From Monocercomonoides exilis PA203 (lineage: Eukaryota; Protista; Preaxostyla), in assembly GCA_001643675.2 (NCBI GenBank), contig LSRY02000016.1, forward strand, positions 372,001-436,000: a stretch of 64,000 bases of DNA. Direction: 5' to 3'. A program made the position numbers and the translations under genes. This document shows, one piece after another, positions 907 to 47,618 of the stretch. How positions within the stretch are numbered: position 1 is the first letter of the stretch; every line of letters begins with the position of its first letter. The notes under the pieces were generated by a model. That model saw only the letters and a list, made by a program, of their open reading frames with translations. It was not told the DNA's origin and did not search any database.

Positions 907-999
907 GCGAAGATGAGAAGGGAAGGCTGGAAATTACACACAGGAGAGGTGACAAGCATCACACTGGAGAAGAAAATACTTTAGGAAGAGACCTCTTCT

Positions 1000-1890
1000 T
1001 TGCATGGGAAGAACACGTTGGAGTAAAGGTCATAGCAGCAGCAATACTATGAAATCAAAAGAGTGAAAGAGATACGTGGAGAGCGCTGCGAAGATTTAAG
1101 CGATTCCTGGATAGAGAGAGCATGGATGGCACTGACCCCCTCACAACCAAAAACGCCAAATGGATAATGGCAGAGTTTATTGAAACACTCTCGAATACGA
1201 ACCTCTCAAGCGGAGTGATTCATCAGACAGTACGGAAAGTTCTGGATTCCATTACCCTTTTTAGGGATATTGAGATTGATCGAAAGGACATAGAAATATT
1301 TCTAAAAACCTATGTGGGAGATAAGCCGAGAAGAGGCAAGAGATACAAATCAATGTGGGACTTGACAATCATTACGATATGGGCTGAAACCACAAACAAC
1401 GCAAAGGATATACGAACGCTCCAGATGAGAGCCCTCATCCTCACTATGATTTTTGGAGCTTTAAGACCAGCTGAGTTTGAGAGAATGAGAAGTGATACTG
1501 CATTATTCAGAGAGAACACTGCACTGACGTAAGTTCAGACAAAGATAACACGAGGGGAGATTTTTTCAGTCGTTATTAAAAGGCATCTTAACCCACGTAT
1601 CTATCCAGAAGAAGCGTTCCAATGATGGATAGATTATGCCAGGACAACTTTTGAAAATGAACATGTGTGGTTTGATATTAATGAGAATCAACCTGAAAAT
1701 TTGCAGAGAATAAAGGAAAAGTTAACGGCATCTCTTCGAGAGAACGGAATACCTGAAACATTCACCACATCCTCGATAAGACATAAAGTGGAAACACACT
1801 TAGCTAAACTTGAAGGTGCAGATTGGAAATAGATCAATGATCGAGCGAGCTTGACTCCAGGTTCAAGACTTAACCCAGAAAATTAAACAG
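1000..1890 (+). pseudogene. Tyrosine recombinase (phage-integrase family) remnant of the DIRS element
   Basis: RALILTMIFGALRPAE (catalytic Arg box I), QTK, FTTSSIRH (degenerate HxxR box II), W.*IND...PGS C-terminal box; interrupted by TGA 1050, TAA 1530, TGA 1623, TAG 1830. Confidence 0.8.
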
Positions 1891-4070: not shown

Positions 4071-7000
4071 TCATCTATTGCTATATCCACTCCAGCTTCT
4101 GCTCTGTCGAGTCGCAGCCTCGCTGCCTCCATCATCGCTCCTTGCTTCAAAATCGATGGCGTCTGATGCTGTGACAAACACAGCTCCTGCGGGAAACCGA
4201 CTGAAGAATTCTCGCTTCAAAGTTATCAAGCCCCACCTCTCCGATGGCGATGCAGACAAGCATGCTTTTATCATTTCTCCATATTCCTCACTCCCTGCTT
4301 TCTCGGGTTTCGGCCTTTCCCCATTCACAATTTTCTGCCCGGCTGCTTCTGCAGAATAGTCTCCAAACGGGATCTTCAGAGTCAGGCATTCCCACAACAT
4401 CATCCCCACAGAAAACACAACTGACTCCTTTGTCGCTCTCATCTTTTTTCTTCCCCATCAGCTCCGGCGCCTTCCATCGCTTGTATTCGTCTCTGCAGCC
4501 TTCATCATCCTCAAATGCCGATGAGGGTGGCGGTGAGTCTACGAATCGCTCACTCATCAATGAAACATCAGAGGATGATGTGGCAATCGTGCATGATGAA
4601 GCAATGGATGAGGAGTCCGAATCCGACTCATCAGAGCAGTCAGAGTGAAGCGCTATGACAATCACCATCTGCTCAGAGAACAGCACAATGTGCGGACTCA
4701 GATTCGCCAATGACTGAAGCGGGTTTTCCATCTCATTGAAAGAGTGCAGCGCTCCATTCACCACCCAGAACAGGATCTGTGCAGCTGTCATCTCCCGCTC
4801 CTTCAATGAACCAATCGCCATCTCCTTCTTCTCATTCTTCCCATGCACAAGCATGAATAGCGAGTCACGAAGATCCGCTATCAACTTCTCATGCGGCGAC
4901 GAGCATGCCATTCCATCCACAAGATTCGACATGGATGACGTGGTTGGGCACAGACTCTCTGATCGAACAAATGTTGAATCTGAATCAGTTGTCGAAGTGG
5001 TGGAAGTGGATGAAATGGATGGCGATGGTGTTCTCTTCTGAATCTCTTCTTCTTCAACCTTCTCCAGTGCCCACTCCGGAATCTTGTCTGAATCTCTCCC
5101 AAGGATGTATTCGGTGGAGCCGCTCTCACTTAACAAATGCTCGGATGATTCAGAATGTTGCATATTCGTATCATATGCTCTTTTCTTGATCCTCTCTTCA
5201 TTCTTCTTCTCTGCCTCCCTCTCAGCTCTTTTCCACTGTTCCTCGGGAGACATCTCCATTGTCACCATCTCAATCAGCTTCGGATCCTTCCTCACTGTAT
5301 CTTCCACAATCTCCTCCAGTTCTTCTGTTCTTCTTTTTGCTTTCTCCATCGAACAGTTGTAACCACTGCTATAATCAGAATTACAAAAAGAACAACAGCC
5401 ATTATTATAACAACCAATGGCCATGATGATTTTTCTTTGTTTCCTCCTTCAACAAGTTTTTCGTTTCCATTCACCTGTGCTTCTGTTCTGTTCTTCACAA
5501 CAAACCATTTCGTGCCCTGCCGCCTGGCTGCATCTCCAAACTCAATCCTCACCCTCACCTCTGCTGTCTCTGCCGCTCCTCGAGCTGCTGATGCTCCTAT
5601 TCTGCTGCACACCTCCTCCTCTGACACATAGTCAGATTCCACAAACTCATGCCGCTCCACTGCTTCTGCATCCCCATCCCATACGCTCACCCCAAATGAA
5701 AGATTGCACGGAATTAGCAGTCGCCCCACAAACCTCACCTCCAGCTCCTCCCCTGCTCCCCTCATATGCGCCTCCTCCACAACTGGCACAAACAGCGCCC
5801 ATCCCCTTTCCCCTGCAACCCCTTCCAGTGTGCACCCTTCACTCAGAATCCACAGCGAGCTGTTCTCCTTTGCCCCATCCCCTCCTTTCAGGCTCACAAC
5901 ATTAACCTTTCCCAAACCGCTGCACACCACATTCCGCCGGATGGATCTGTACTTCTCCACTGTCCCATTGTTGTTCTCAAACATCCCCATCTCAATCCTC
6001 ACATCCCCACCATCCACCCCAGCCCCTCCACAGCTGCTGTTTGCAATTACTGTGTCTTTCATCCGACTGCTGCAATTCTCCATCTCAACAACTGATCCAT
6101 TCCAAAAGCATATCCCTTCCTCCGCTCCCTCCCAGTTTGTCTTCTCCAACAATCCACATCCATCAAACGTACAGCTGTCAAATGCAATGCTCGAAGCACA
6201 CAAAACCTTCACTCCACTCCCTCTTGCCGATTGCGATGTGCATCTTCGGAATGTGCAGTTCACAATTTCTCCCATCTCTTTCCCTTCCCCAGCTCTTAGC
6301 AATATGCACGATGCTCCTCCAGAGAGGCGTGTGATGTTTTCAAAGCTGCACGATCCAATTCGCGGCAACAGCTTTGCTCCAGAGCAAATGATGCTCCCAT
6401 CTTCCACGCTAATATCCGCCACGCTCACATTGTTCACGCTCGTCTCTTGCTCCGGCCCTGATGCCTCGATCACTCCCTTCACTGTTTCCAAGAATCTGAG
6501 ACCTGCAACCTGAACGCTTGACACAGCACAGCCACCGCCTCCAATCCATATCAGCGAGAACCTAATTCTCGCCTTCCCATTCTCCTCCTCCCCATTTTGC
6601 ATCGTGCTGAACGTACACAGCCGTATCCTAAGCATCCCGCTCTGTACTTCAATCAGCCTTGCATGGCTCCATTCTGCTCCTTCTGCAAACACAAACCCCA
6701 ATCCTGTCACCTCCACATTCCTCTGTGTCGCAATAACCCCTTCCCTTCTCTGCTCTTCAATTCCCTTCACAATTATTTGCGCCATGTCGCCTCCGCTCGA
6801 CAGAACCCTCATCTCCACAAAATCGCACTCCCTCTCAATCACACTCTCTTCCTCCACAAACATCTGGCTCACATAATCCCATGTCACATGCTCCACCCCA
6901 TAGTCGATCGATCGGCATGGAACTTCAGGCATTCCACACGATCTCTCATTTTTGCCTCCCTTCTCTCTGCTGCTCGACACCACAATCGTGTCCGACTGGA

Positions 7001-10000
7001 ATATCGTAATGATTCCCATCAGATCAATCGCCTCCACTGTGTGCTGTGTCCTGTCCATCCCACACATCCCGTTTTGACGCATATACACACTTTCCCGCAG
7101 ATCCAACCGGAACTGTGTCTCGTTGATCTGGTTCTCGATGCTGAAGCACTCCACAAATACATCCCGTCCCAATGCTGCATCATTTCCACGAAACTCCATG
7201 CTCCGCAGCTCAAAGTCCAGCTCCCCTGTCACTTCAGAGTGCAGATATAGCCCTCCTCCCTTTCCTCTCTCTGCAGAACATCCACTCTGCTTTATTGTCG
7301 ATTCGCTCATCCGCAGCCACCCCCCTTCGTTCAACGAGAAATACACAACCCCTCCTTTCTCGCTTTCCGACGATTTGCACGACTCAAACACGCACCCGCT
7401 CACATTCACACAAATCCCGCCATCGCACTTACACTCAACAATCCTCGGCCTATTCCCTTGCCCTGCCACAAACAAAAATGTCGAATTTTCCATTTCAACC
7501 ACACTTCCCTCATCACCGTTTCCAACATCACCATCCACAACTTGAACAACTGCCCCATCTCTAATTCTTCCCGACTCCACACGCATTCCAAGCAGAATGC
7601 ATCTGCACCCTCCATTCACCTCAAATAATCCTTTCCCTCCATTCATGCTCCTCGACTCCAGCTCATCCGCCCTCAGCTCTCCATTAAACATCCTCACAAA
7701 CACACTCCCTCCTCCTTCCCCTTCTCCTCCCTCTGTGCCCTCTCTTGTCTCAAATACACACTTATCCAGCCAAAGTGTTCCTCCATTGTTTTCAACTGCC
7801 CATCCTCGTCCGTTCTCAAACCCTGCTGCCATGCACACACTCATCTCCTTCAGCACAAGCATCTTCGTGTTCACAATCACCCCTCTGCCTCTCTTCTCTC
7901 CATCTCCTCCAAACACCAGTGCAGATCGAGGCAGCTTCTCCTCTCCATTCCTCCACCTCTCCACACTCAAGCTCGACAGATCCCACTCATCCTCCACTCC
8001 CACCTCTCTTCTGATCATAACCCTTTTCTCCTCATTCTCTTTCTCAATCTGCTTCATCCCTTTCCACAGCGTGCCGCACGGATCCCTCTCGCTTCCACAT
8101 CCCATCACATCAAACCCATCCTCGCTTATGTACACCACCCCCGACCAGTACTTCACCACAAGTCGGAGCAGATCCGTCTCTCCAAGTTTCTCATCCTTCC
8201 CCACAAACAAGTTCTCATCCTCTTTCAATTCTCCATATATTACTCCAAACGACTGCTCGTTCACCGTCTTGTTCAGATCCACTCCTTCTATGTATATCGC
8301 CTTCCCTCTTGCTCCTCCAACCGTTCCCTTGAATTCCGTGCCTGCAAAACGCAATCCATCCTCTTTCAACCCTTCCCTGCTGTCCACATATATCACCCCT
8401 CCACACCCTTCCTCCCACTCCCATCCGCACCCTTCAAAATAGCTATTCGATATCCCAAACGTATCCTCTCCTTTCAGCTTCACTCTCATCACCCCTCCTC
8501 CTTCCCCATCTCCATCCCTTCCATCCCTTCCATCCCCTCCAACCCTCTTCACATCCTCAAACACACACCCGCTCATCTCCACGCTCGAGCAAAATTCAAA
8601 CGCCACTGCCCCAATCTCCATTTCTTTCACCAAACATGAAACTGCCATCACTTTTCCCCCACTGCTCTTCACCATGCTATATTCCACTATCCCTGCTCCC
8701 TCCACCTCAAACTCACACAAAACCAGCCACAACTCCGCATTCCCTCCTCCACTCCACACAACCTCCTTCTTCCCCTCTTCAAGTCTCACTGGCACAACCA
8801 TCCTCACCCTCTCAACATTCAGCACCTTTTCGTTCTTCACCACCCAGCTCTCCCCATCTCCTTCGATCTTTTCCCTTATCTCAACAACACTTTTTCTCCT
8901 CTGCCGAGCTCCCTTCCACCTTCCATCCGGACAGATCTTCCACCTTCCTTATCCCGACCATATCGATGACCTCCATCTCAATCATCCCATCCTCGTTCTC
9001 TCCATGCTCAACCCCTTTCTCAAACGACTCGCACGGATACTCCTCTCGCCCACACCCCATGATGTCTGCCCCATTGCTCCCCACCACAATCCTTCTTGAG
9101 CGATATCCCACCAAAAAATACATCAGATCATGCGCCTTCTCCGAAAACCGCCCTTCATCCCTGCCCATCATCCTCACACCTGCCTCGCCTCCTTCTTTCA
9201 CCAGCTCCAGCTCAAACCGCTCCCCAACAACACTCTCCTTCAGATCTCTGCACTTAACAAACACATCATCCCCTTCATGAGCCGCATTCCCCTCAAACAC
9301 CATCTTCGATATTCCAAACCTGTTCTCACAGTCTGCATGGATCCACATAAACACCCCACCTCCTCTCCCTCCTGTCTCTTCTGCCCTGCAATTCTTCACT
9401 GTGCAATTCTTCACCAGCACTTCGTCTTCCCCACTCATCTCCCAGCTTACCGCCCCGCCATCTCCCCTCCCTGAGCAGCACCCAACAAATTCACACTCCT
9501 CGCTCAATTCCACCTTCCTTCCATCCATCACCCTTATCACTCCCCCACTCCCACCCCAGCAGTCCCGCGCCTTCATTCTCTTCACCACTATCTTCGTCCC
9601 TTTCTCTCCAATCACCAGCCCACCCCCATCTGTCCTTGCTCCATTCATATTCACATCCTCGCACAACAACCCCCCTCCCTTCATAGCACACATCCCCCTT
9701 CCATCTCCAAATTCCATCTGCTCCACACTCACCTTCTTCAGCTCCACTGACCCTCCTCTCCCACAAACAATCCACATGTTTGTCTTCCTCTTCTCTTCTC
9801 CTTTCCCTCCAAACACACACTCCACAACATGAACCTCTCCCACTCCCATCTCAAAAAGCTCCGAGTGCGCAGACTTCTCTGCCACTTCAAACTTGATCCA
9901 CTCAATCGTCAGCGTCGTCGACCAGCTCCCCACCATCACACACACTTTCCCCCTTTCCCCCACCACCACCTCCGACTTCGCCACCTCGTCTCCTCGGATC

Positions 10001-13000
10001 GTCAGCGACTCTCCTTCTCTCCTGATCTCCTCCCCAAGCTCGCTCTCCTCCATGATATGCAGAATCGTCTTCTCCTTCCCCAGCTTCTCATACCCTCCCT
10101 CCACCGTGTTGCACGGCAGCTCATCGCTCCCGCAGTTTTCCTGCCCAGTCACAGTCCTGTTCACAAAGATGATGTCTCCCTTCGGCGGAAACAGATATTT
10201 CAGCAGCGTCACATCGATCCCCGCATTCCCCGGATCCACCACCCACATCGTGTTGTTGTACTCCTCCCCTTCCTTTGCCGACCCCTCCCACTTCCTCCGA
10301 TCAATCACCACTCCTGGCTCTCTGCACACCAGATACACATCCACCCCAATGTGCCCTTGATTCCCTTCAAACACATCCTGCCTCATCGAGTAGCTCACAT
10401 CCACATCTTCAAACTCCATGAACAGCCCTCCTCCCTTCCCTCCGTTTCCATCCACTTTGCTCTCCCGCACTTCGTTCTCCTCAAACACCCAGCTCCCTCC
10501 TTTCCCCACACGAACATGCACACTTCCCCCTTCCCCCGTTCCGCTCTCGCACCGAATCACACTCACAACGCATCTCTCCACCACACACTCCATCCCTTCT
10601 CCCACACTCCCCACAATCACTGCCCCATCCCCTTCCATACGCGTCACCCCGCTCACATTGCTTTCTGCCATCCTCACGCTGCTCGTCCTATCAAACTCCC
10701 ACACACAGTGATCCCCAAATGTCACTCCTCCGCTTGCCGATGTGTTCCCCACCTCCAACGACGACCCCTCTCCAACCCATATCAGCCCTTTCTTTCCTCC
10801 ACTCGCCACTCTCTCAACCACAACCCCTTCAACACTTCCTTTCGATCCCTCTCGCAATTCAACCATGCTCCCACTCTCAAACTCCTGCTCCCTCACCTCA
10901 ACACTCTTCAGCTCCATCCTCCCCCCAACACACACCACAAAGCTGAACCCCGCTTTTCCACTCCCCATCCTCATTCCGCACCTCTCCATCACCAATCCCG
11001 ACAGCCGGCTCACCACCACACTCCGCTGCCCTCTCACAAATGTCTTCTCCACCACAAACACCACATCTGCAAACCCTGTATCCTTCCTCGTCTCTATCAC
11101 CCCTTCGCTTTCTTCTCCCAAATCTCCTCTCACTTCGTATTCTCTCCTCTCTTCACACCCCTTCACATCCATCTCTTGCGTCGATATATCAATCACTGAG
11201 CAAAATGCAAATCCCCTCTTCAGCACTATTTCTGCTTTTCTCCCGAAAAACCTCGCCCTCCCGCAGTGCTCCATCGTCGCACACCCAAACCACTCAAACC
11301 CACACAACGAATAGTCCATTCCTCTTTCCCCTTCCACGTACCCTGGACTTCCCCACTCCTGAACAAACACCCCAAGTGGAACTCTCATCTCCTCTGCCTC
11401 ATCATACCCCACAAATTCCAACCCATCCAGCTCCCCACCTCCCACATCCACCTTCAGTCTCTCCGAACTCACAACACCCCCCAGTCCTCTCCCTCTCACA
11501 AACATCTTCCGGCCCACCCATGCCCAGCACTCCTCAAGCTCAACTTCTTCAATCTCAAACCCATCTGCCACACTGCACTCCATGAACATCCACCCTCCTT
11601 TCCCTTTCGTTTCCTTTTCTGCACAGCACCTCTCCCCCTTGCAGTTCCCCACAATAACATGCCCTTTCCCTTCAATACACACCTTCAGCGCTCCCCCTTC
11701 CTCATTCGCCCTTCCATCCACATCCGTCATGTTGCACCACAAAAACTCCAGCTTCCCTCCAATCACACTCGACACAATGCACGCCCCATTCCCCCCCAAG
11801 CACCCAACACTCCCAAACGAACAGTTCCAAAACTCCACCCCACTTCCCTCAACCCTTCCTTCTCCTCCTGATTCAAATCCCAGATCAAACATTGGCTCCT
11901 CCACCACAAACCCCTCAAACCGTGTTTCTTCCACCTTCAGCACTTCCCCGCTGAAACGGATAATCGCATACCCCACACTTCCTTGCACCCCGTCCTCCAA
12001 TCCAAATCCACACTTCCTAATCCAAAGCTCACCGCCTTTCGACTGACAATTCATCAGCTCTGTGACCCCTCCCTCAAATCTGCTTGGCATCTTCACATCC
12101 AGCCACTCCAACTCCGTCACCCCTTCCGTCTTTATCGCTGCGCTCCATTCCCCGCTCAGCATCCCTCTCACACTCATCTCCATTGCAATCTCCCCCATCC
12201 CTCCCAACCTCGCTCCGCTCACATCCACCTCTTCTCTCAGCTCTGACCCTCCTGTCAGCACCACCCACTTCTCCCCATCCTTCCCTGCATGCCCAAGCCC
12301 ATACTCCACTGTCATGCATGGATATGCGCTCATCCCGCAATACACCTCATTCCTCCCTCCCTCTTTCCGAACTTCCACCCTCCCTGACACATATCCCGTG
12401 ATAAACACATACAAATCCGTATCCTCCCTCATCGCCTTCCGGTCTCGCCCAACCAGCGAGTTCCCCCTCTCCCTAATCGACAATCCAAACCCAAACCTCA
12501 AAGGAGTCACATACTCGCTCAGCTCATCACATATCACATACACATCTCTTCCAGCTTTTCCTCCGTTCCCTGCAAACTCCACATCCCCAAACACAACTCC
12601 ATCCCCTTCCACCCCCAGCTCCACAAACACTCCTCCCCCTCTTCCTCCAACCCCTTCCTGTTCCCCTGCTTCACACATCTCCACCACACTCTTCTCCCCA
12701 CTTTCCCCACTTTCCCCACCCTCCCCTATCTTCACCCTTCCCCTTTCTCCACAACCACCTTCATCATCCCCCATCCCCTTTCCCGCTTCTGCACCTGCTC
12801 GCTTGAACATTCACCACCTCCACACTCCCTCCGCTCCCCACAACCCCATTCACACCAACCCCATCTCCTTTCCCTGCTCCTATCGAACTCATGTTGCACC
12901 CACTCACCTTCACATACCCTGCCCTTTCGCTTCTCACCACACTTCCTTCTCCAAGCACACACTCATTCGCCTTCGAATTGTTCATCTCCAGCCTGCTTCC

Positions 13001-16000
13001 ACTCTTCACCACAATCATCGACCCTGATTTCTCGTTGCATCCTGTCATCCCCACATTCTGCAGCTCCACCCTCGACCCATCTGATCCTTCAATCAGCCCA
13101 TCCCCAGACACCCTCGACACATTCCTCAGTTCTGCATCCTCCAGCACAATTGATGCCTCGCTTCCAGCTGCAATGCACATCCCATCCCTGTCGAAGTGCA
13201 CAGACTCCAGCCTCAACGACGGCCAAACCACACTCCCGCATGTCACTTTCACCAGCGAAAATCTCACAACAACCCCCGGAGCTTTCAGATCAATCGCACA
13301 CTCCAAAACACTCAAGCTCCCTCCCCTCACCTCAATCAATGCTCCTCCTCCTGATAGAATCGCCGGAATCCACATCTTCACTCTCTTCAGCACCGTGCTC
13401 TTCCACACACAAAACACCCCTTCTCCTTCTCCTTCTCCTTCTCCTTCTCTCCTTGCTGCATTGTCCACCACTGACAGCACAGTCAGCCCTTCGTCTCCAG
13501 TCACCTCATAGCTCCCCGATGTCATCTCCACCTGCTCGCTCACTTCCACCAACTCGTGCACCTCCACTTTGTGCTTCTCACCCCCTTGCCGCTCAAGCGA
13601 ATACTTCAGTGTTCGGCATGTGAAATACTCAAACCCACAGTTTTCGTGATCAGCCCCTCCTCTGCTCGCATGCACAGTCTCCCCAACCTCCTCAAAATAC
13701 ACTTTCACAGGGATCACCAGCGACCTCCACTCTCTGTCTCCTATCCCCGCATAATCCTCCCATCCCCATCCTCCTCCCCGAAGAAACCCAAACTTCTTCA
13801 CACAGCTCACCTTCAGATCTGCAGAGCAGATAAACATCATCTTCCCGCTTTTCGCTTCATTCCCCACAAGTTCCATATTCTCCATCCGAACATCATCTTC
13901 CGCATTTCTCATCTCCACATACAGCCCTCCGCCCCTTCCTTTTCCGCTGCTCCCGCTACCACTTCCTTCTTCAGCCTTGCAACCCTCAATTTTCGTGCTC
14001 ACGCTGCTTCCCCCCAAAACTGCCACACTCCCTTCCACAACTCCCACATACACTCCACCCCCATTCCCACTGCTGCACCTGCACCCCTTCACTGTGGTGT
14101 TACACACAATCACAGTCTCTCCTTCCCTCAGTGTTTTGCTCATCACTGCTCCATTTCCCCTGCTTCGCACAATGTTCCTTATGCTTCCCCCAGCAATTCT
14201 CAGCTCTCCCGGATATCTCGATTCAAGCAGCGCACAGTCTTCCATCTGTATCCCCTCTATCTCGCTGTCTTCAATCTCGCACACCCCGTTTTCAACAACA
14301 AACATCGGTCTTCTGCAAAACACTCCTGCTGCTTCACTCCTCACACTGCACCTCACCAACCGTGCCCTCCCTCCTGCTTCCCTCACACTCATCAGCGACC
14401 CCTCTCCAGATGCCTCTCCATCCATCACAAACACAATCGAGTCCGCTTCAATTGTTCCGCACGTGATCCAGACAAGCGCATCCCCTGCTGCTGCCCATCG
14501 TATTATCGGCCTTTCTCCGCTCCCCTTCACCTCAATCACAATCACCCTATCTTCCACCCCAATCCCTCGCTCTGCAAAAGTGCTTCTGCTCAGCGATATC
14601 TTTTGCTTCAGCTCTGGATTCCACTTCGTCACTCCATACCCTATTGTCTTGCACTCATCTTCCATTGTCCCACAGTGTATCTGGTCTTCCTTCGTCGGAT
14701 TCACATTTATCTCCCCTCGAATGGTGTTCGGTATCCAGCTTGGCCTGCTCTCATTTATTGGGCATGTCCATTCATTCGGTGTGAAGCAGTGCCACACCCT
14801 TGGTTCCGCACTCGTGGAGCTGCATGTGGCAAAATCATTCGCTGCATACAGCGTCTCATGATCTGTTCGGAATGCCACATCATGTCCGTTGCCCAATGTG
14901 CATGAGTTATTCTCAAATAACAAAAATCTCAGTTTCACAGGTTTCACAGTATTTTTATTTCCTTTAAAAATCATAGCCCCTCCGTAATAATGAGCTGAAT
15001 TGTTTGCTAATGAACAATTTGTAATTGCTTGATTCAATGATATTGCGTTCCAAACAACAAGGCATCCTCCATATCTCGGATTGGCGCAATTATTAAGAAA
15101 CGTGCAAGATCCAATGAATAATGCATCGCTAACAGCTGACGAGAACAATCCAGAATAATGTCCTCCAGTATTTTCTGCAAATATTGAAGAAGTGACATAT
15201 ACAGTACCTGCTGCCTTTGTTGTTATATAAACACCTGCACAATAACTTCCACCAGTTTCTTCAACAGAGCAGTTAATGACAGAACTATTCATCATGTTTA
15301 TGAAACCCGTTCCAGTTGCATACACTGCACCTCCATATGAATCTGGCAAAGTGGATTCCAACGAACAATTTCTGAATGTTGTTCGCAAAATTGAAAGTGT
15401 GGCATTCCCCGTGATGCACACCGCTCCTCCGTAACTCCCAATTGTGTGCACTGTGAAAATCGAGTCTTCAAGAATCACATCTCCTGTTGAGTTCTCTTGC
15501 CTCGTCGAGTTCACATTTTGCTCGCACCTCTCAAACGATGTGTTCATCACAAAACAGCATTCTTGCGTGTGATACCCATCATAAAGCATCCCACTGTCTC
15601 CATTTTCCACCCTCTCAAATATTGAAGAAGCAACTCCAATCCTTTCAGCATTGTTCTTCCTGACTCCGTTATCTGCTCCATCACTTTTGCCATCCACTCT
15701 GTCTCCACTGATTCTTCCTGATATGTTCCTGAACAGGCAGTTCTCCACGAAAATCTCTTTCAGACTCCCTCTTGCCAAAGCCATCCCTCCCTCTGCCCTC
15801 AAACACTCAAATCTGCTTTCCTTCAGCTTCACCTCGTTGCCTCTTCCAAATCCCTCCACAACACCGCCTCTCCAATTTCTTTTCTCTTCTCTCATTTTCA
15901 CTGTCATCTCCAGCACAACCCTGCTGTCTTCGCACCAAAACAATCTTTCATCTCCGCCTCCAATCGCAATCTCGCACCAAACAACCTCCAGCAATGATCC

Positions 16001-16327
16001 ATTCAACCTCCCGATCCATTCAAATCCTTCTCTGCTCCCCAGCTCTCCAGATCTTATCACTAACGAGCTGTTGCAACAGTCAAACCTCGTGGAGATTCTG
16101 CTCCGCATCACATCTCTCATCTCGTGATTTTCATGTGCATTCTCGCTCTTTCTTTCTTCCCGCTTTCCATCTCCAATCAAATTTGTGAACAAGCTTGTTT
16201 GCGTCATCAGCCTCTCTTCTTCTTCTTCTTCTTCCTGAAAATCTTTCATTTGCACTCTCTTTCCACTCGTTTCTTCACAAACACCACAAAGCATGGCCAG
16301 CACCCCCAACTCCAGAAATAATATCAT
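4071..16327 (-). CDS. Giant (~4080 aa) single-pass receptor-like protein: signal peptide, beta-helix/Pmp-like ectodomain with 8 CGxxxxxC modules, TM helix, TKL-like pseudokinase; split by 5 homopolymer frameshifts
   Basis: ORFs 12764-16327, 8881-12810, 5292-8843, 4288-5424 and 4071-4442 are collinear with the intact paralog at 38481-47618. GGA(V/I) and FxxN motifs; TM WPLVVIIMAVVLFVILIIAVVTTV; C-lobe RWKAPEL...VFSVGMMLWECLTLKIPF. Confidence 0.85.
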
Positions 16328-29197: not shown

Positions 29198-29232
<35 letters not shown>

Positions 29233-38480: not shown

Positions 38481-41400
38481 GTGGCGAGGCGCTTCCTTAA
38501 CATGAGAGCTGCATACAATATTATTGCATTATTATTGCTTGTTATGAGCTGCTGCAATGGCAAAGGCACTGAAGAAAAGCAATTCCAACAAGAAATAAGC
38601 AAGGAGTTACAGAAAGGCAAGATCAACATTGATGATGGAAATAGAGAGAATTGCAATATTTTTGGCATTCAGAAAGAAATGACTGGATGTGAAACTGACA
38701 ATCTGATTTGCTATATCCAAACAAGTGTGAATATCATCAACACCTCCTTGTGCGTGACCCATCTCACGTTAGCGCCTCTCAGCGGTTGTCCACTCCTCAC
38801 TGCCCAACACCACTCCGCTGCCTCCATCTGCTCCTCCACTTGCACCGTCCACCCACCTTCCCTCACCAACAACCACCACCACCACCACTGCCACCTCTTC
38901 CTCTCTGCTCATGCCTCCATCGCCCTCACAAACTTCTCCCTCACCACCCACCAACCAGCTATCTTCTCCTTCCCCCTCTTCTCCACCCCAAACAATCTCC
39001 TCCAAGACGCCCACTCCCCAATCATTGCCTCCTTCTCCATCTCCCGCTCCTCTTTCTCCTCTTTCGTCTCCCTCATCCAGCCCTTCCTTTTTTCTCCTTC
39101 TTCCCTCTCTTCCCTTTCCCCTTCTCCTTCATCTTTCTCATCCTCATCCTCATCCTCTTCTTTTTCTTCCCCTTCCCCTTCCTCTTCCTCTTCTATTTCC
39201 TCTTTCTCTTCCCCTTCCCCTTTCCATATCCATCACCAATCCCATCCCCGCCTCCAAATCCACCTCAATCTCCATCTCTCAAACACCCTCTTCTCCAACA
39301 TCTCCTCTCCCCAATCCCATCCATCTCTTCCATCCCTTCCCTCACGCTCACTCAACCCATTCATCTCAACAACAACCACTTCCACTTCCATCAACACAAA
39401 CATCAATGTAATCCCCTCCATCTCACTACACTCATCCATCTCCATCCACTCAACCATCTTCCTCCACACTCACAACCCCATCGATGGTGCCATTCTCCCA
39501 AACCTCAACAGCCCATCTACTTCTCTCTCTGCTTTCAACACCTCTTTATTTCAACAAACACGCTCTTCACGTAATGGTGCAAAGGAGTATATTGGAACTG
39601 AGTCTCAAAGAAAAACTCCCGGAAGATTGGATTCATTTGATCAGAGCAGCCATCGTTTTGAATGGTGTGAATGGATCAACTCAAGCTGCGAAAGTGATCA
39701 TGGAGGTGCTCTGAAAGTCAACTGCACAAATGCAAATATCACAATCACATCTTGCTCGTTTTTCAATTGTTCAACCTCAGGTAATGGTGGAGCTTTGCGT
39801 TGCGATTACTTGTTAAAAATAAACATTACAAATTCCAACTTCACTAGTTGTTCGGCTGCGAATGGAGGAGCAATTTGTTTTGCATTTATACGATTCAATT
39901 CTATCTTTTATCTTTCAGAAAACAAAATTGAAAATAGTAATATTACAAGCTATACTGCCACAGGTTGTTACTTTTTGCTGGAAGCATTTTCGACATCAGG
40001 CCAATTCCTGTTTTCAAAATGTCAATGCATCTCAAATTCTGGTGGTGATTCTTCAGGTGCTGTCACTTTTACTAGGCTTCCATCAAATAAGCCTAATCAA
40101 TTTTTGGTTGAGGAGTGTCAGTTTGTTTGCAATAAATTGACTGCCTCTGCAATATATGGAGGCGCTGGGCTGTGTTGCACAAACACTTTCACTTGGATGA
40201 GCGGGTTCAAATTCATCACTTTCTGTTTCTTCGATGGCAACACCGCAACTAATGGCAGAGGAAATGATGTGTTCTTCGGTGGAAGTAATATTACTCAATC
40301 CCCGTTCGAAAATTGCGGTTCAACAACCCCAGCAAAGAGAGTTTGGAACAACAACACAGCTGATAATGAGACTGTCAACAGCTGGCTCCCTCTCATAAGC
40401 CAGAACAAAATCGTTGCCAGCAATGGAACTGATGCTGATGCCTGTGGCAGACCCCAACAGACCCCATGCGCCACCATTGAGTATGCCCTCAACGGCTTCA
40501 TTTCCCTCCTCCAAGACGCCTCCCTCACCCTCCTCACCTCAATATTTGTTCCCATTCAAACACTCACTTTCAGCACAGTTGACACTAAAATCACTGGAAA
40601 TGGCACAACTGCCACCACTATCGCCTCCAGTGGCATTCCCCAACCATCAAACTCATATTCGCAGTCATCACATTCAACATCATCTCTTTCCTCATTTTCA
40701 TCCCCATCAACAATTTCTTCACCAGATCCATCTGCCACTTCTGCCCTCTTCCAACAGACCCAGGGCTCCCTCACAGTCTCTGCCCTCGCCATCGCCCACA
40801 ACTCCTCAAATCCCATCACCCCCATCCTCTTCCACCTCTCCGATAACTCCCCTTCCCTCAACCTCAACACAACCACCATCACTGGAACAACCACATCTTC
40901 ATCATCAATCACCACGCCCCTCTTCTTCCTCACTGCTGGCTCCCTCGCCTTCAACCACACAGCAATCACAAAACTCTCCCTCAAAAGCCAAAGCATCTTC
41001 CACCTCACCTCCCTCACCGCTCCCCTTGCCCTCAACTCCTCCAACATCACCCACGTCACCTCCACAGCCACCCCCACCAGCTGTGTCCTCTCCTCAACCT
41101 CCTCCCCTGCCCTTTCACTTTCCATTACCAACTGCACCATCACCAACATCGACTCAGTTCCACAAAGCCAACAGACTGCCACCAATGGCGGATGCATCTC
41201 ATTCGCCTCATCTGCCTCTGCCAACTCGTTTTCTGTGAGTGATTCCACCTTCTCCACCTGCTCTGTGAGCGATGATACAAGTTCTGGAGGAAGAGGCGGT
41301 GCTCTCATGATCGAGTACAACGATGATTCACAAGTGTCATCCACAACCTTTTCCATCACCAATATCGTGTTTTCTGCCAACAAGGCCAGTATCGGAAGAG

Positions 41401-44400
41401 ATGTGTATTTTGTGTGTGAGTCCCTTGTCGCTTCTGTAAAGGAACCGTTGTTCGACTTCATGGGAAGTATCAGTCAAAAAGACAACTCGGTTGTTGGACA
41501 TGATAGAACAGAAGCTTTCGGTGATTGGGATGTCGATTTATTCATATTTCTCGATGGATTCTTTGATGATACAATATTTGTCGATGGAATATATGGAGTC
41601 GAAGAGGTGTATTGTGGATTGGAGAAGGCGCCATGTTTGAATGTTAATTATGGAATGGAGCATTTGAAGAGAACGCAGAATATTAAACAAGAAATTGTTT
41701 TGTGTTCAAAATCGACTGTGACAGGATGTTTGAATGTGAGTGGATTGTGTGTAAAGGCGAAAACCGAGACAATTGTGGAGATAGAGTGTCAAACAGAAGT
41801 GAGTGGATCTGAAGAAGAATGTATTCTGAAATCATCATCGCTAACAGAAATGAAGTTCATTAAGATTGTTGTTCCATCGAGTTTTAGCAGAACAGTCTCT
41901 GAAGTGATCGAGTCAAGCACTCAAAATGGAGAGTTGCACATGAAGAACTGTGAGATGAGTGTGAAGGGAGGAAAGGAAAACACGATAGGATTTTTCTTGA
42001 TCAAATCGACAGGGAAGATGATTGAACTGGATTTTGTCACGATTTCAGATGTGAAATCAGCAGGGTCGTTATTTTCATTTTCGCTTTCCTCATCAAATGT
42101 GAATGAACAGGAATACAAAGTGAAACTGTTAAATTGCACACTAGAAAGATTGGAGATTGATAGCACAGCAATAGTAGATGAAAAGGCATCAGTGTTTGGA
42201 AAGAGTGTTGGAGTTGGGATGGTTATGAATGGAAGTACAATTAACGGGGCTTTATCAGAAAAGAGCAAAGAAGGAGGAGCACTGAAAATATTGTTGAGCG
42301 AAGGAGGATATATTACAATTCAAGAGAGTTCATTTACTGGATGTGTTTGTGAGAATGAGAACAATGGAGGAAAAGGAGGAGGGATTTATCTGGATTGCAG
42401 TTCAAATGGAGAAGCATTTCAGCTTTCATCGATATCGTTTTCTGGATGCTCAGCAACAGTTGGGAAGAATATGTTTGTGAAGAGCAGCAATCTGGTGAAC
42501 ACTGTGAATACAGAGCGTTTTGCAATTGTTAACACAGATTACGAGGAGGATGGGAATGCATTTGTTGGGGAAGATGGGACTTATGAGAAAATGGATCTTC
42601 GAGTGTTTATTGTTTCTTTGAAATGGTTAGTCGTATCTGTGTCGACTGGTGGGCATGACACATTTGGGTGTGGAAATGAAAATTTCCCATGTCAATCAAT
42701 GAAAAGTGGAATTGACCACATTGACAGAAGTGAAACAGAAGGAGAAAGGAAAGTGAAAGTGAAAGATGAAGGGACAATTGAAGATATTTATTCATTCACA
42801 AATGCACTTGTGATTGATGGGTGTGTGAATGAAGGAGATGTCATTAAACACAAGCCTGTTCAATTTTATGAAAAAATCAATGGGGATTCTGAATCATCAA
42901 CATCTGTTATTTCATCAACAGTATCACTCAGCTTGTTATCTTTGATGTTGCAGATTCCAAATCAATTTGATCCAAATATGGATTCATTGATCTCATCGAG
43001 TAGGATTCTCCAACTCGAAAACTGTTTATTTGTGGTCCAATCATCAACGGCCATTCAATACTCGTTGATAACAACAACCACTGGAAGTTGCACATTGAAG
43101 GGATGCATTTTGGCAGATTGTTCATTTGCCAAATCACCATTGGTTATGCGTTCTTCTGTTTTGCTTGAAAACAACAACTTTTCAAACATTGTGAACACTG
43201 GAAGTGGTGAAGGAGGTGTTGCAAATGTGACATTGCAAGGAGATGAAAAACTGGAGATCAAATCAACAAATGTGTCATCTTGTTCACTTTCATCAAACAA
43301 TGGAAAAGGAGGATTTTTGTATTTGGATTGTGAAAATTGTTTGAATGAGAAGCCATTTCTTTTAGAAAACGTCTCGTTTGCAAACAACAATGCAGCCATT
43401 GGAAAGAATGTGTTTATTTTTGGAAAGGATTTTAATACTTCTGTGACAAATGAGTCATTTGCCTTCGATTATTCATCAATGATAAATGATGAAACACTGT
43501 TTAAGGGGAGTGATGACTTTCATACGGACAAGGATTTGTTCATGTTCCTTGTTCCATATAGCTCAACTGAGATATTCATCTCATCGAATGGATTTGATGT
43601 TGCAAGATGTGGAAGTGAAGAAGAACCATGCTTCACAATGTGGAAAGGGATGGAAAACATGGAAATAGGGACTAGAATGAAAACAATTCAAATTGAAGGA
43701 TCATCTACAATTCGAGATTCATTCAACATGTCCAATTATCAGATCAAAAAAGCATCATTTATGGGAGAAGAGAATACGAAAGCAATATTGAATGTTGAAA
43801 AGGCAATTGGAAATCAACTGGAATATTTCATGGAAAATTATATTCATCTTGAATTGACAAATATCCAACTGCAATTGTCGTCTGGATTTGACAACTCAGC
43901 CAAAACAATTATTTCAAACAAAAATGGAGAATTGATGATAAGTGAATGCTCTTTCCATTCAGAGGCAGGAGTGAACAATGGATTTGATTGTGTATTTGTG
44001 GATGCGATTGGAGGAAGTGTGGAAGTGAATGTTTTGTCGATGGAATCGTGCAATGTTGGAAACAATATTTTTGTCATTCATGATGCTGGAATAACTTGCC
44101 ATTTCTTGAATGTTCGAATGGGTTCGTTAAATGAAAGCAGAGGATGTATTTTATCAATCAAGAAATCTGAGCCAGGATTGAAGAATTATGAAGGAGAAAA
44201 TGAAGAATGTGTAAATATTGAGATTGAGAAATCATCATATTCAGGAGTGAAGAGAAGTGACAATGGAGCAAGTATTTTGGAATCAATGAGCGAGAATAAG
44301 ATTTGTTTGGTTGTGAATGAGAGCAACATCACAGAAGACAAAGCAGAATTGAGTGAAAAAGGAGGATCAATATTTTTCACATTGGGTACATCTGGATCGA

Positions 44401-47400
44401 TGAAGATGATTGAATCAGCAATCACTCATGACAGTTGCAACAACAACACGGGAAGAGGAGGAGGAGTATATTTGGCAGCAAAGGAAAGAACATTTTTGAA
44501 TTTCACATTTGTGGGAATGAAATTCAGTTCAAACACAGCAAGAGTGGGGAATGATATTTTCATCGAATGTTACAACATCTCATCACAGATCAATGAAAGT
44601 CAATTTCAGTTTGATCTTCGAGAGAATCATTATTCACGAATTAATGCGATATATGGAAGAGATGAATGCGATTACACATATGACATTGACCTGATTGGAT
44701 TTATTACGATCCATCAAAGTGACACCATTATTGTGAGCAGTGTGAATGGAACAAATAGCAGAAAATGTGGAACAAACACACTTCCATGTTTTTCAATTGA
44801 TCATGGACTGATTCATCTGACTTCAGATTTTATTAGTCAGATGTTCATTGTTGAAGAGAGTGTGATTTGTGAAGAGATAAATCTGGAGGAGATGAGTTTG
44901 AGTTCGAAGAGTCGAGGCTTGTGTGAAGTTGAAGTGAAATCAAGAATTGAAAAAACAAAGGATTCTTTGATTTCAACAAGAGAAACAGTCTCGTTGGTGA
45001 GGGTGATTTTTGTGTTTGATTCGAATTTCATTTCTCAACATGAATCACTGATGTCACCAGAAGAAGGGATTCTTGAAATTATGAATTGTTCTTTTTCTTC
45101 AAAACAACCAATGGAAAGTGTTAATGCTGAATTTGCAAACATTTCATTACACATTATTAATATGAGAAAAGGAGAATTGCAACTTGATGGATGCTCAATG
45201 TCAAATCTCATTCTTTATGAATCAGCATTATATCTTTCATCATCACTTCCATCATCAATTGATTCATTAATGATTTACAATTCAACAATTAAAATTTCTC
45301 TGATAGATATTAATGAATGTGGACAATTAACAATTAAGGATTTCAGTACAGAAAATATCACAGCCGAAGGAAATGAAGAATCATTAATATCGTGCCTGTC
45401 ATTGAAAAAGACAATTCAATTGGCAAATTGCACAATAGGTGGAATCTATTCAAACAAAGCAAAAGGGAAAATGATGAAATTGGAGGATTGTTTGGATGTG
45501 AAAATGTACAGTTGCGTTTTTGATGTGAGTTCAAAGGAAAGAAACGAACAATATTTGAATTCGGAAGAAGAGATGTGCAGATGGGAATGTTCTCTTGTGG
45601 ATGTTGTGAAAAGTTCTGTTTTGATGAAAGATACAACAATCTCGAATTCATCAGAAGGAGGAATAACAATGATTGGAGGGGAAATGACTGTTAATGATGG
45701 AAGATTTGAGAACAATAATCCCTCAATTGAAGGATATCCATCATTGAGAAGAAATATCATCTGTTCAGATGCTGGAACATTGAATGTGATGAGTTTGAAA
45801 GGGGGAGATGGATTGGAGAGAAATACATCTCTTTGGATTCTGAATGAAGGGTGCGGTTTTGAAGGGATTGTTTCTGAGAGGGATTCATCATTCTTCATTC
45901 CTGTGCTGGAGAATGTAGAAGCAAAGGAAGAGACAGAAAGAATGAAGTTGACATTCAAAGGATTGCTTCTTGTTCCATGCAATCTGTCATTCTCAGTCGT
46001 GAAGAGAAAGGGAGAAGAGAAAGAGATTGAACAATATGATTTTGATTCAAATGGATTCTTGTCAGAAAGAAAAGTTGAAGGAAGTGTGGCAAAAGATCTC
46101 ATCAGCAGTTGTGGAAATGAAATCGAAGTAATGGTTCAGATTTTATTTGGGAATTCAAATGCTCTTTCTTCAACCGATTCATTTATTCTGAAAAATGCAA
46201 CTGTATCTGAATCGAATGGAGATGGAAGCATTGTGAAAGGAGACAACAAAACAAGTTCATTGTGGGTTGTGATCGCTATTATTTTATTTGTTCTTTTTAT
46301 ATTTCTGATAGGATTTGTTGTTCTCGCCATTCGATGGAGGAAAGGAAAAGAAGAAATTAGGAAATACAAGGAGATTGCGAACGATAACATCAGAAAAGAT
46401 CCGAAGGCATTTGAGATGGTGACGATGGAAATATCACCTGAGGAGCAGTGGAGGAGAGCAGAGAGAGAATCGGAGAAGAAGAATGAAGAGAGGATAAAGA
46501 AGAGGGTGTATGAGAAAAGCTTGGGGCATTCTGAGTCTTCGGAATATCTTCTGGCTGAGAATGGCTCAACTGAATACATTCTTGAACAAGACTCGGATAA
46601 AAATGGAGAATGGGAATTGGAGAAAATGGAAGAAGGTGATGAAGAAACAAGGAAGAGTTCACCATCACCATCAGTTTTATCCACAGACACTGAAACCACA
46701 TTTATTCGTGGGGAAGATCTGTGCCCAACTACCTCATCCATGTCGAATCTGGTTGATGCAATGGCTTGCTCATCGCCTTTTGAAAAACTGATTGTGGATC
46801 TGAGAGATTCGCTGTTCATGTTGCTTCATGGGAGGAATGAAAAGAAAGACCTGGCGATTGGCACATTGAAGGAGAGAGAGGTGACGGGAGCGCAGATGCT
46901 GTTCTGGGTGGCGAATGGAGCTTTGCACTCGCTTGAAGATGAGGAAGACGAACTTCCCTCTTTGCGAGACCTGAGTCCGCACATTGTGCTTTTGTCAGAA
47001 CACATGGTGATCTGCATTGCGCTCCACTCCGACTGCTCCTCTTCATCTGATGATTCAGATTCATCCTCAACCTCATCAACCACGATTGTGACATCTGCCA
47101 GCGATGATAATGAGGAGGAGAAGGAGGATTCTCTTCCATCATCAGCATTTGAAGATGAGGAGGAGAAGTGGAAGGAGTGTTTAAGATGGAAGGCGCCAGA
47201 GCTGATGATGAAGAGCAAGATGGGAGCAACAGAAAAGTCGGTGGTGTTCTCGATTGGGATGATGCTGTGGGAGTGTTTGACGCTGGAGATCCCGTTTGGA
47301 GAATACGAAGGGGAAGTGGCGGGGCAGAAGATTGTTGATGGAGAGAAGCCGGATAAGAGGGGGATTGAAGAGAGTGGATTGAAGAATGTGATGGATGCGT

Positions 47401-47618
47401 GTCTGTCTTCAGAGGCATCGAAAAGACCGACTCTTGCCGAGCTGAAAAAAGAGCTGATTGGACTGTTTCCAAGTAGAACATTTGTTGCGACGATGACAGA
47501 TGCAATCATTCTTGAGGAAAGCAGTGAAGAACATGAAGAAAACATCGAGAGCAAAGAATGTGAAAAGGAAGGGGAAATGGAAGTGAATCTGATGAAAGGC
47601 ATGTTTAATGAGGAATGA
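38481..47618 (+). CDS. Giant (~3040 aa) single-pass receptor-like protein: signal peptide, beta-helix ectodomain with 5 CGxxxx(x)PC modules, TM helix, TKL-like pseudokinase
   Basis: Uninterrupted 9.1-kb ORF (first ATG ~38502); hydrophobic N-terminus; HGGAL/NGGAL/NGGAI repeats; TM LWVVIAIILFVLFIFLIGFVVLAI; RWKAPEL...VFSIGMMLWECLTLEIPF...CLS...RPT. Confidence 0.92.
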   Translation: MARRFLNMRAAYNIIALLLLVMSCCNGKGTEEKQFQQEISKELQKGKINIDDGNRENCNIFGIQKEMTGCETDNLICYIQTSVNIINTSLCVTHLTLAPLSGCPLLTAQHHSAASICSSTCTVHPPSLTNNHHHHHCHLFLSAHASIALTNFSLTTHQPAIFSFPLFSTPNNLLQDAHSPIIASFSISRSSFSSFVSLIQPFLFSPSSLSSLSPSPSSFSSSSSSSSFSSPSPSSSSSISSFSSPSPFHIHHQSHPRLQIHLNLHLSNTLFSNISSPQSHPSLPSLPSRSLNPFISTTTTSTSINTNINVIPSISLHSSISIHSTIFLHTHNPIDGAILPNLNSPSTSLSAFNTSLFQQTRSSRNGAKEYIGTESQRKTPGRLDSFDQSSHRFEWCEWINSSCESDHGGALKVNCTNANITITSCSFFNCSTSGNGGALRCDYLLKINITNSNFTSCSAANGGAICFAFIRFNSIFYLSENKIENSNITSYTATGCYFLLEAFSTSGQFLFSKCQCISNSGGDSSGAVTFTRLPSNKPNQFLVEECQFVCNKLTASAIYGGAGLCCTNTFTWMSGFKFITFCFFDGNTATNGRGNDVFFGGSNITQSPFENCGSTTPAKRVWNNNTADNETVNSWLPLISQNKIVASNGTDADACGRPQQTPCATIEYALNGFISLLQDASLTLLTSIFVPIQTLTFSTVDTKITGNGTTATTIASSGIPQPSNSYSQSSHSTSSLSSFSSPSTISSPDPSATSALFQQTQGSLTVSALAIAHNSSNPITPILFHLSDNSPSLNLNTTTITGTTTSSSSITTPLFFLTAGSLAFNHTAITKLSLKSQSIFHLTSLTAPLALNSSNITHVTSTATPTSCVLSSTSSPALSLSITNCTITNIDSVPQSQQTATNGGCISFASSASANSFSVSDSTFSTCSVSDDTSSGGRGGALMIEYNDDSQVSSTTFSITNIVFSANKASIGRDVYFVCESLVASVKEPLFDFMGSISQKDNSVVGHDRTEAFGDWDVDLFIFLDGFFDDTIFVDGIYGVEEVYCGLEKAPCLNVNYGMEHLKRTQNIKQEIVLCSKSTVTGCLNVSGLCVKAKTETIVEIECQTEVSGSEEECILKSSSLTEMKFIKIVVPSSFSRTVSEVIESSTQNGELHMKNCEMSVKGGKENTIGFFLIKSTGKMIELDFVTISDVKSAGSLFSFSLSSSNVNEQEYKVKLLNCTLERLEIDSTAIVDEKASVFGKSVGVGMVMNGSTINGALSEKSKEGGALKILLSEGGYITIQESSFTGCVCENENNGGKGGGIYLDCSSNGEAFQLSSISFSGCSATVGKNMFVKSSNLVNTVNTERFAIVNTDYEEDGNAFVGEDGTYEKMDLRVFIVSLKWLVVSVSTGGHDTFGCGNENFPCQSMKSGIDHIDRSETEGERKVKVKDEGTIEDIYSFTNALVIDGCVNEGDVIKHKPVQFYEKINGDSESSTSVISSTVSLSLLSLMLQIPNQFDPNMDSLISSSRILQLENCLFVVQSSTAIQYSLITTTTGSCTLKGCILADCSFAKSPLVMRSSVLLENNNFSNIVNTGSGEGGVANVTLQGDEKLEIKSTNVSSCSLSSNNGKGGFLYLDCENCLNEKPFLLENVSFANNNAAIGKNVFIFGKDFNTSVTNESFAFDYSSMINDETLFKGSDDFHTDKDLFMFLVPYSSTEIFISSNGFDVARCGSEEEPCFTMWKGMENMEIGTRMKTIQIEGSSTIRDSFNMSNYQIKKASFMGEENTKAILNVEKAIGNQLEYFMENYIHLELTNIQLQLSSGFDNSAKTIISNKNGELMISECSFHSEAGVNNGFDCVFVDAIGGSVEVNVLSMESCNVGNNIFVIHDAGITCHFLNVRMGSLNESRGCILSIKKSEPGLKNYEGENEECVNIEIEKSSYSGVKRSDNGASILESMSENKICLVVNESNITEDKAELSEKGGSIFFTLGTSGSMKMIESAITHDSCNNNTGRGGGVYLAAKERTFLNFTFVGMKFSSNTARVGNDIFIECYNISSQINESQFQFDLRENHYSRINAIYGRDECDYTYDIDLIGFITIHQSDTIIVSSVNGTNSRKCGTNTLPCFSIDHGLIHLTSDFISQMFIVEESVICEEINLEEMSLSSKSRGLCEVEVKSRIEKTKDSLISTRETVSLVRVIFVFDSNFISQHESLMSPEEGILEIMNCSFSSKQPMESVNAEFANISLHIINMRKGELQLDGCSMSNLILYESALYLSSSLPSSIDSLMIYNSTIKISLIDINECGQLTIKDFSTENITAEGNEESLISCLSLKKTIQLANCTIGGIYSNKAKGKMMKLEDCLDVKMYSCVFDVSSKERNEQYLNSEEEMCRWECSLVDVVKSSVLMKDTTISNSSEGGITMIGGEMTVNDGRFENNNPSIEGYPSLRRNIICSDAGTLNVMSLKGGDGLERNTSLWILNEGCGFEGIVSERDSSFFIPVLENVEAKEETERMKLTFKGLLLVPCNLSFSVVKRKGEEKEIEQYDFDSNGFLSERKVEGSVAKDLISSCGNEIEVMVQILFGNSNALSSTDSFILKNATVSESNGDGSIVKGDNKTSSLWVVIAIILFVLFIFLIGFVVLAIRWRKGKEEIRKYKEIANDNIRKDPKAFEMVTMEISPEEQWRRAERESEKKNEERIKKRVYEKSLGHSESSEYLLAENGSTEYILEQDSDKNGEWELEKMEEGDEETRKSSPSPSVLSTDTETTFIRGEDLCPTTSSMSNLVDAMACSSPFEKLIVDLRDSLFMLLHGRNEKKDLAIGTLKEREVTGAQMLFWVANGALHSLEDEEDELPSLRDLSPHIVLLSEHMVICIALHSDCSSSSDDSDSSSTSSTTIVTSASDDNEEEKEDSLPSSAFEDEEEKWKECLRWKAPELMMKSKMGATEKSVVFSIGMMLWECLTLEIPFGEYEGEVAGQKIVDGEKPDKRGIEESGLKNVMDACLSSEASKRPTLAELKKELIGLFPSRTFVATMTDAIILEESSEEHEENIESKECEKEGEMEVNLMKGMFNEE

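Follow-up and report, generated by a model that had tools for sequence, protein, structure and literature searches.

Old heads on a compositionally anomalous, probably homogenised scaffold in giant receptor-like genes of Monocercomonoides exilis

The 64,000-nucleotide stretch of Monocercomonoides exilis PA203 DNA analysed here (the window, positions 372001-436000 of contig C10) contains a giant receptor-like gene (gene 1, 4071..16327, minus strand) and an intact paralog with the same architecture (gene 2, 38502..47618, plus strand). It raises the question of why about 0.5 kb of gene 1 turns AT-rich within a coding strand that is otherwise rich in G. An earlier note on this DNA had proposed that this island, which encodes the distal beta-helix domain or head, is a compositionally foreign cassette recombined between constant scaffolds. 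The results set out below show that the unusual DNA is the 11-kb scaffold and not the 0.5-kb island. The head keeps native AT-rich codon usage and old differences between copies under purifying selection, and the scaffold differs less between paralogs than neutral divergence would permit. With a probability of roughly 0.6, these properties are best explained by gene conversion that homogenises the scaffold, with heads that mostly escape, keep their old differences and swap short patches, the scaffold being the part that carries the skewed composition. Genome searches covered an assembly of 82,301,135 bases in 101 contigs, and the heads were compared in an alignment of the head regions of 18 paralogs.

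On the coding strand, the island at 14890-15410 has base frequencies of A.30, C.16, G.22 and T.32, with a guanine-plus-cytosine (GC) content of.37 and a skew of +0.15, against G.42, C.12, GC.53 and a skew of +0.57 in the flank at 13000-14600. Along gene 1, coding-strand G lies at.36-.46 and C at.09-.13. When third codon positions are scored as G or not G, a two-changepoint likelihood fit places the trough at 15406-14858 (minus strand), nearly identical to the coordinates of the earlier note, with third-position G at.13 inside and.42 outside (log-likelihood gain 30.9). The trough, which is also marked by fourfold-degenerate sites and skew, covers the GGA/F..N coils of the head beta-helix. Residue usage differs along the gene, with N, T, S and A abundant in the head and G, E, V and R in the flanks, and it could be argued that the need for Asn, Thr, Ser and Ala codons alone produces the island, with silent sites unshifted. 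This explanation is refuted by the fourfold sites, where G goes from.14 in the island to.50-.65 in the gene 1 flanks, with C at.01-.03 in the latter; the third-position shift thus exceeds amino-acid constraint.

The same sites bear on whether the island is foreign. Its fourfold frequencies (A.45, T.34, G.14, C.07) resemble those of unrelated genes in the window, from which the flanks deviate, and "foreign cassette" is therefore the wrong label: the island is composed like ordinary coding DNA of this genome, and it is the flanks that are anomalous. For the genome as a whole, a GC content of 36.8% has been reported, with 41.3% in coding and 29% in intergenic DNA (PMC6759080). An abrupt change in GC and skew might suggest foreign origin or Nanopore misassembly of the island, and this is hardly credible, given that the island composition equals that of host coding DNA, that the open reading frame (ORF) at 12764-16327 crosses the island without interruption, as the earlier note had observed, that the domain lies at the equivalent position in 18 aligned paralogs with hundreds of genome matches, and that five independent copies have an identical arrangement.

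The layout of gene 2 mirrors that of gene 1 with opposite polarity. Its head island of native composition (39520..40400, plus strand), at the equivalent position where the earlier note had placed an island in the paralog, is flanked by two C-rich, nearly G-free patches, one before the head (38700..39520) and one in the first module after it (40400..41250). At fourfold sites, C is.54-.57 and G.02-.03 in the patches, against C.13 in the island, a contrast that codon need again fails to explain. In outgroup subfamilies, an AT-rich head is likewise followed by a G-skewed body, in a milder form. Purine-rich (E/K) and pyrimidine-rich (S/P/T/L) blocks also occur in other genes of the window, though with third positions that stay AT-rich; the receptor tracts therefore combine block polarity with a strong GC enrichment.

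The relationships between copies show which part of gene 1 is old. Its first 1187 residues have four close copies, comprising an inverted duplicate with 100% identity at a distance of about 25 kb, two more copies on C10 (97% and 96%) and one on contig C68 (90%). Comparison with the C68 copy delimits a block of old divergence at about 14691..15441 (minus strand), with 22.5% of sites differing in 15363-14691 and 3.2% elsewhere according to a changepoint fit (log-likelihood gain 116). The head has diverged by 20-30% among copies that are otherwise 94-97% identical. Between gene 1 and the C68 copy, synonymous divergence (dS) is.56-.66 in the head and.07 in the flanks, while the ratio of nonsynonymous to synonymous divergence (dN/dS) is.27-.31 in the head and.18-.44 in the flanks. 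The 1.5 kb of upstream noncoding DNA has diverged by only about 5%, and the downstream part of the C68 copy is 94% identical beyond an internal deletion of about 5.5 kb. Since upstream, flanking and downstream DNA have barely diverged, only the head is old in this subfamily. The two further C10 copies each have a patch of 100-200 bp within the head that differs from the window copy, and these patches share some states with the C68 copy.

The C68 copy itself (C68:61403-66292) has a frame of 2288 aa, compared with 4105 aa in the intact form, and its deletion joins module regions, a case in which modules were lost through unequal recombination. The high mismatch seen against this copy below 13,095 is a misalignment caused by the deletion. 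A chimera carrying a foreign body was considered for C68 and ruled out by the downstream match.

A similar contrast is found in the two other subfamilies. Among gene 2 and six paralogs, mean dS is about 1.0 in the head,.20-.28 in the patches and.40 in the body, with a head dN/dS of.23. In a quartet of mildly skewed genes on contigs C36 and C16, dS is.48 in the head and.14 in the flanks, with a head dN/dS of.35. The upstream noncoding DNA of the gene 2 subfamily is unalignable (p-distance about.5), and because this neutral DNA is saturated while the coding flanks remain alike, the paralogs must be old and their coding flanks homogenised. Flanks below neutral divergence, together with conflicting trees of different regions, are the features of concerted evolution. 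Third-position divergence also drops with rising absolute skew (Spearman rho -0.64, p 1e-8). Over the three subfamilies, head dN/dS is.23-.35, a range without any overall sign of positive selection.

In approximately unbiased (AU) tests, the head, the patches and two body segments have trees that are for the most part mutually rejected; with the short alignment of the head alone, two alternatives come out only marginally worse (p.07-.09). The difference between island and flank trees that had been looked for is thus present, and it extends further than proposed: since the region trees are mutually incongruent, recombination acts gene-wide and is not limited to the island edges. Nor is it restricted to sharp breakpoints common to the islands. 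The compositional edges of the gene 1 trough are gradients over 150-250 bp without sharp steps.

Replacement of the head as a unit between constant scaffolds, perhaps from an archive, as in a surface-receptor or antigenic-variation system, would offer another account of the old heads. It draws on the fact that only the head differs between the C68 and C10 copies, in the midst of upstream, flanking and downstream DNA that is 94-97% identical, and on the short head patches with states common to several copies. The heads of the gene 2 type are also numerous, with at least 129 scored matches among 1721 first-look candidates at 62-73% protein identity. Many of these lie in open frames of 360-820 aa, on contig C25 between 1.49 and 2.51 Mb, where dozens of short-frame heads occur, frequently in inverted pairs whose members score identically and are separated by 4-17 kb. 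Among the matches scored, however, the best other head is only 73% identical in protein to that of gene 2. DNA searches of the genome with the window head, the C68 head and two variant patches gave the five copies only, so that neither the near-identical islands nor the orphan donors suggested by the earlier note were recovered for the gene 1 head or its patches, and no silent copy close to the variable region came to light. Moreover, head and flanks have identical nearest outgroup genes, tree incongruence spans the gene and not the island alone, and there is no evidence of an expression site. Replacement is accordingly considered unlikely, although it keeps some weight. As for the idea of an exchangeable module, the distinct genealogy of the heads, the mosaic patches and the incongruent trees speak for it, while the lack of a donor and the nearest relatives shared with the flanks do not. 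Nothing in the assembled genome sequence shows a programmed antigenic-variation switch.

Targeted hypermutation is a further alternative, in which a locally raised mutation rate would explain the high dS of the head without a different ancestry. It is in line with head dS and dN both being raised, with dN/dS near flank values. It nevertheless appears very improbable. The head substitution spectrum is ordinary (92 transitions and 67 transversions, with all types represented), head composition is at equilibrium, and variant sites are grouped in patches common to several copies. Identity between subfamilies is highest in the head, at 40-45% against 20-35% elsewhere, and the saturated upstream DNA of the gene 2 subfamily implies that the flanks are too similar, not that the head is too different.

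The favoured explanation is therefore that interlocus gene conversion between paralogs would keep the scaffold alike, with heads mostly evading homogenisation and trading short patches only. Each copy would thereby retain its own probable ligand-binding tip atop a common scaffold. The escape of the heads may be due to selection keeping them different, or head divergence may itself block conversion tracts. The compositional contrast follows from the scaffold, and not the head, having the abnormal strand-skewed, GC-enriched composition. This account fits all three subfamilies and has no need for missing donors. Several points weigh against it. In the gene 1 subfamily, copies are 94-97% identical outside a 0.75-kb head, including 1.5 kb upstream, and there a single head replacement would be more economical than homogenisation of the surrounding 12 kb. 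The link between conversion and skew is a correlation only, and GC-biased conversion alone predicts that both G and C rise, while C at fourfold sites (C4) stays at.01-.03. Each subfamily is represented by 4 to 7 sequences, and the singleton changes considered next were polarised by majority rule, by which some may be mis-assigned.

With regard to the origin of the skew, recent lineage-specific substitutions in the C-rich patches of the gene 2 subfamily comprise 109 losses and 33 gains of C. All seven lineages show a net loss, and the excess persists when gene 2 is left out (90 lost and 28 gained, p 9e-9). In the gene 1 flanks, 30 G were lost and 17 gained. The implied equilibrium frequencies are.23 for C, which is now at.49, and.29 for G, which is now at.39, while the head is near equilibrium. 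The skewed tracts are thus out of mutational equilibrium, and because recent substitutions erode the skew, present point mutation does not make it. We infer that something else made or maintains it, such as a bias linked to conversion, selection or a past episode.

Several candidate sources were examined and rejected or found insufficient. Symmetric GC-biased conversion as the sole cause does not agree with a complementary base near zero (C4.01-.03 in the gene 1 flanks; fourfold G.02 and C.55 in the gene 2 patches), and a mutational skew tied to the absolute strand does not agree with six gene 2 paralogs keeping their coding-strand profile on either genomic strand. The C-rich patches are not an inverted G-rich body read in antisense, as no composition-corrected antisense homology was detected; in the sense frame, they give weak, mostly collinear matches to module regions of other family members. 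Motifs for G-quadruplexes are not enriched, with 4 in piece b of gene 1 against 6.7 ± 2.1 in codon-shuffled sequence and 0 in the gene 2 patches. Local 9-mer repeats reach 2-3 times expectation in some skewed parts but 1.1 times along the 3.9 kb richest in G, and since similar ratios occur elsewhere, slippage or simple sequence is a weak candidate. A pure A-to-G (deaminase-like) model was also discarded, as pyrimidine-to-purine transversions contribute more over all positions; at silent sites of conserved residues the model does fit, with 22 A-to-G changes and 3 G-to-A changes. A (GGAGAA)n purine microsatellite at 13419-13449, encoding Gly-Glu repeats, varies by 30 bp in length between copies and shows ongoing slippage in the G-rich body.

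A more speculative proposal, and a rather improbable one, is that the G-rich and C-rich tracts were made by a homology-dependent, strand-polarised process that acts only where paralogs are alike and so spares the heads. Such a process might consist of biased repair during interlocus conversion or of a repeat-triggered mutator. If this were true, it would constitute a eukaryotic counterpart of repeat-induced mutation with opposite polarity and would have a parallel in the GC-skewed cassettes of Borrelia vls, and the receptor scaffold would have a composition from which stop codons never arise. What calls for explanation is a set of kilobase-long, strand-polarised, GC-enriched tracts that include silent sites, have opposite polarity in sister subfamilies and are decaying.

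The proteins encoded by genes 1 and 2 share one order of parts: a signal-peptide-like start, the head beta-helix, a stack of modules, a single transmembrane (TM) helix and a kinase-like tail. In gene 1 (minus strand), a G-rich pre-head leader (15480..16327) combines the signal-peptide-like start with beta-helix-like coils, and the body of stacked beta-helix modules (5425..14600), identified by its G-rich, C-poor composition and by homology to the gene 2 body, is followed by the TM segment (5352..5423) and a kinase C-lobe remnant. Gene 2 encodes 3038 aa counted from its ATG, and an exact look-up of this protein in a public protein collection returned no entry. Pfam Beta_helix matches occur in the body, and the tail matches the PK_Tyr_Ser-Thr profile at positions 160-258 only, which corresponds to the C-lobe. 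The two bodies align with 602 bits (33% identity over 1151 aa), the two tails are 65% identical, and a genome search with the tail gave 95 scored matches among 1413 candidates. The protein is thus a type I membrane receptor-like protein, of which the island encodes the distal head and the tail is a dead half-kinase.

The largest gene family of M. exilis is the tyrosine kinase-like (TKL) family, which overlaps with unclassified repeats (PMC6759080; PMC8767320). Genes 1 and 2 are members of it, as both have a C-lobe remnant after a single TM helix, preceded by a head beta-helix with cap and CGxxxxxC motif and by stacked beta-helix modules. In the passages of these two papers that were searched, the family genes are described only as kinases, and those passages hold no mention of a beta-helix ectodomain, of a contrast between head and scaffold or of skewed composition. 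The silent-site compositional analysis, the dS contrast over three subfamilies and the non-equilibrium result are new here. They supply quantitative evidence that the largest gene family of M. exilis, the first known amitochondriate eukaryote, evolves as old, differing heads on homogenised scaffolds, an arrangement that one would expect in a diversified recognition repertoire.

Gene 1 is read in five frame pieces (16327-12764, 12810-8881, 8843-5292, 5424-4288 and 4442-4071, minus strand), with the breaks at the junctions of these pieces. The first two breaks, at 12773 and 12744, are each one G short within a G run when compared with three sister copies, and further ones lie at 8843-8881, 5292-5424 and 4288-4442. 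One sister copy elsewhere on C10 has an intact frame of 4105 aa. The assembly is Nanopore-based and homopolymer errors have been noted by its authors (PMC8767320), and as the compared copies differ in G-run length, the two compared breaks are probably sequencing errors of this kind and not the sign of a dead gene. The inverted duplicate of gene 1 lies tail to tail with it at C10:356174-368200, before the start of the window and about 8 kb from the 3' end of gene 1. In 6.5 kb, 2 substitutions and about a dozen indels in homopolymer length separate the two, which points to a palindromic duplication of very recent date or else to an assembly that is partly collapsed or mispolished. Between the two inverted copies, window positions 1-1600 hold broken frames in which an RNase H-like match is weak (E 0.01, below the cut-off) and one stretch appears recombinase-like by eye; this segment is possibly a degraded retroelement.

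The whole head domain, as modelled, covers 311 aa (14603..15535, minus strand) and includes the beta-helix, a conserved cap and a low-confidence linker with the CGxxxxxC motif. The GGA and F..N repeats, the cap and the CGxxxxxC motif that the earlier note had recognised are all present and align across the 18 paralogs. The cap (14786..14890) reads N..G.G.DV.F followed by C.STS...RVW, and the first CGxxxxxC motif (14651..14674) has its Cys, Gly and Cys invariant in all 18. The invariant columns of the alignment are G36, A38, F54, C57, G68, G69, G157, C174, G186, F207, N210, G217, D219, S240, W267, D284, C288, G289 and C295. An AlphaFold2 model based on this alignment is a beta-solenoid of about 25 short strands, with a mean predicted local distance difference test score of 83 and a predicted template modelling score of.82. 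In VIA-align comparisons, the model matches many right-handed parallel beta-helix proteins over 216-240 residues (Z 17-19.5, root mean square deviation about 3 Å), among them tailspikes, alginate lyases and epimerases, and glycoside hydrolases, with no single relative prominent; Foldseek against the PDB gave weak beta-solenoid matches only. The head is accordingly predicted to be a right-handed parallel beta-helix of the pectin-lyase-like fold with three-stranded coils.

This predicted fold is like that of pectate and alginate lyases, phage tailspikes and bacterial adhesin repeats of the Pmp/DUF1565 type, a likeness that includes GGA...F..N-like coil motifs. To the Pmp/DUF1565-type repeats, the resemblance exists at the motif and language-model level only: the language-model neighbours of the head carry DUF1565, Chlam_PMP or Beta_helix, but searches of the head against Pfam and NCBIfam gave nothing significant, and Chlam_PMP (PF02415) reached only E 0.84 and 10.5 bits against a cut-off of 20.6, which does not place the head among the Pmp repeats. 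From its position and predicted fold, the head may bind glycans or surfaces.

A number of neighbouring features deserve mention. Three Ser-rich ORFs of 608, 1075 and 1656 aa (18332-23457 and 48578-53548, minus strand) have no Pfam match and alternate E/K and S/P/T/L blocks with AT-rich third positions, apparently a milder, genome-wide version of the block polarity of the receptor genes. A 301-aa ORF (40556-41461, minus strand) runs antisense to the second C-rich patch of gene 2; it has no composition-corrected homology to the family and is put down to a sense frame that is almost devoid of TCA, TTA and CTA codons. At 25265-30233 (minus strand), a gene similar to WASH complex subunit 7 / subunit 4 (SWIP) comprises three ORFs, presumably exons, and has a GC content of.43-.53, above its surroundings, with G and C balanced at silent sites.

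Concerted evolution in which the binding region escapes homogenisation is known from MHC-like and KIR-like receptors and from Anaplasma antigens of the msp2 type. The receptor genes of M. exilis resemble such families in their homogenised flanks, deep divergence of the binding domain, mosaic tracts and incongruent trees. They differ in being giant (9-12 kb) and intronless, in belonging to an oxymonad host, and in that the homogenised parts have an extreme strand-polarised silent-site composition that is out of equilibrium.

Repeat-induced point mutation (RIP) in fungi offers a second comparison, as its strand-polarised altered tracts are likewise confined to repeated parts of high identity and spare unique segments. 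However, RIP consists of C-to-T changes that leave AT-rich, stop-ridden DNA, whereas the receptor tracts shift to G or C with frames that stay open, their purine enrichment includes transversions, and recent changes oppose the skew. The likeness to RIP is a resemblance only.

The closest parallel found is the vls system of Borrelia, where variable regions lie within conserved sequence and the coding DNA is GC-rich and skewed, with 49% GC against 28.6% in the genome and a coding-strand GC skew of 0.52, which its authors consider important for gene conversion (PMC11499132). Gene 1 compares closely, with 53% GC against 36.8% in the genome and a skew of 0.6-0.8. The systems differ in that vls combines a single expression site with a contiguous silent array, and its segmental conversion during infection is unidirectional, features of which the assembled sequence of M. 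exilis shows none. Motifs of the G-quadruplex type in the receptor genes do not exceed compositional expectation, the variable part of the receptors is the unskewed part, and the polarity of the gene 2 subfamily is the opposite one, being C-rich. If the skew of the receptor scaffolds is tied to gene conversion, these genes would bear on the cause of the GC skew at recombining antigen loci such as vls.

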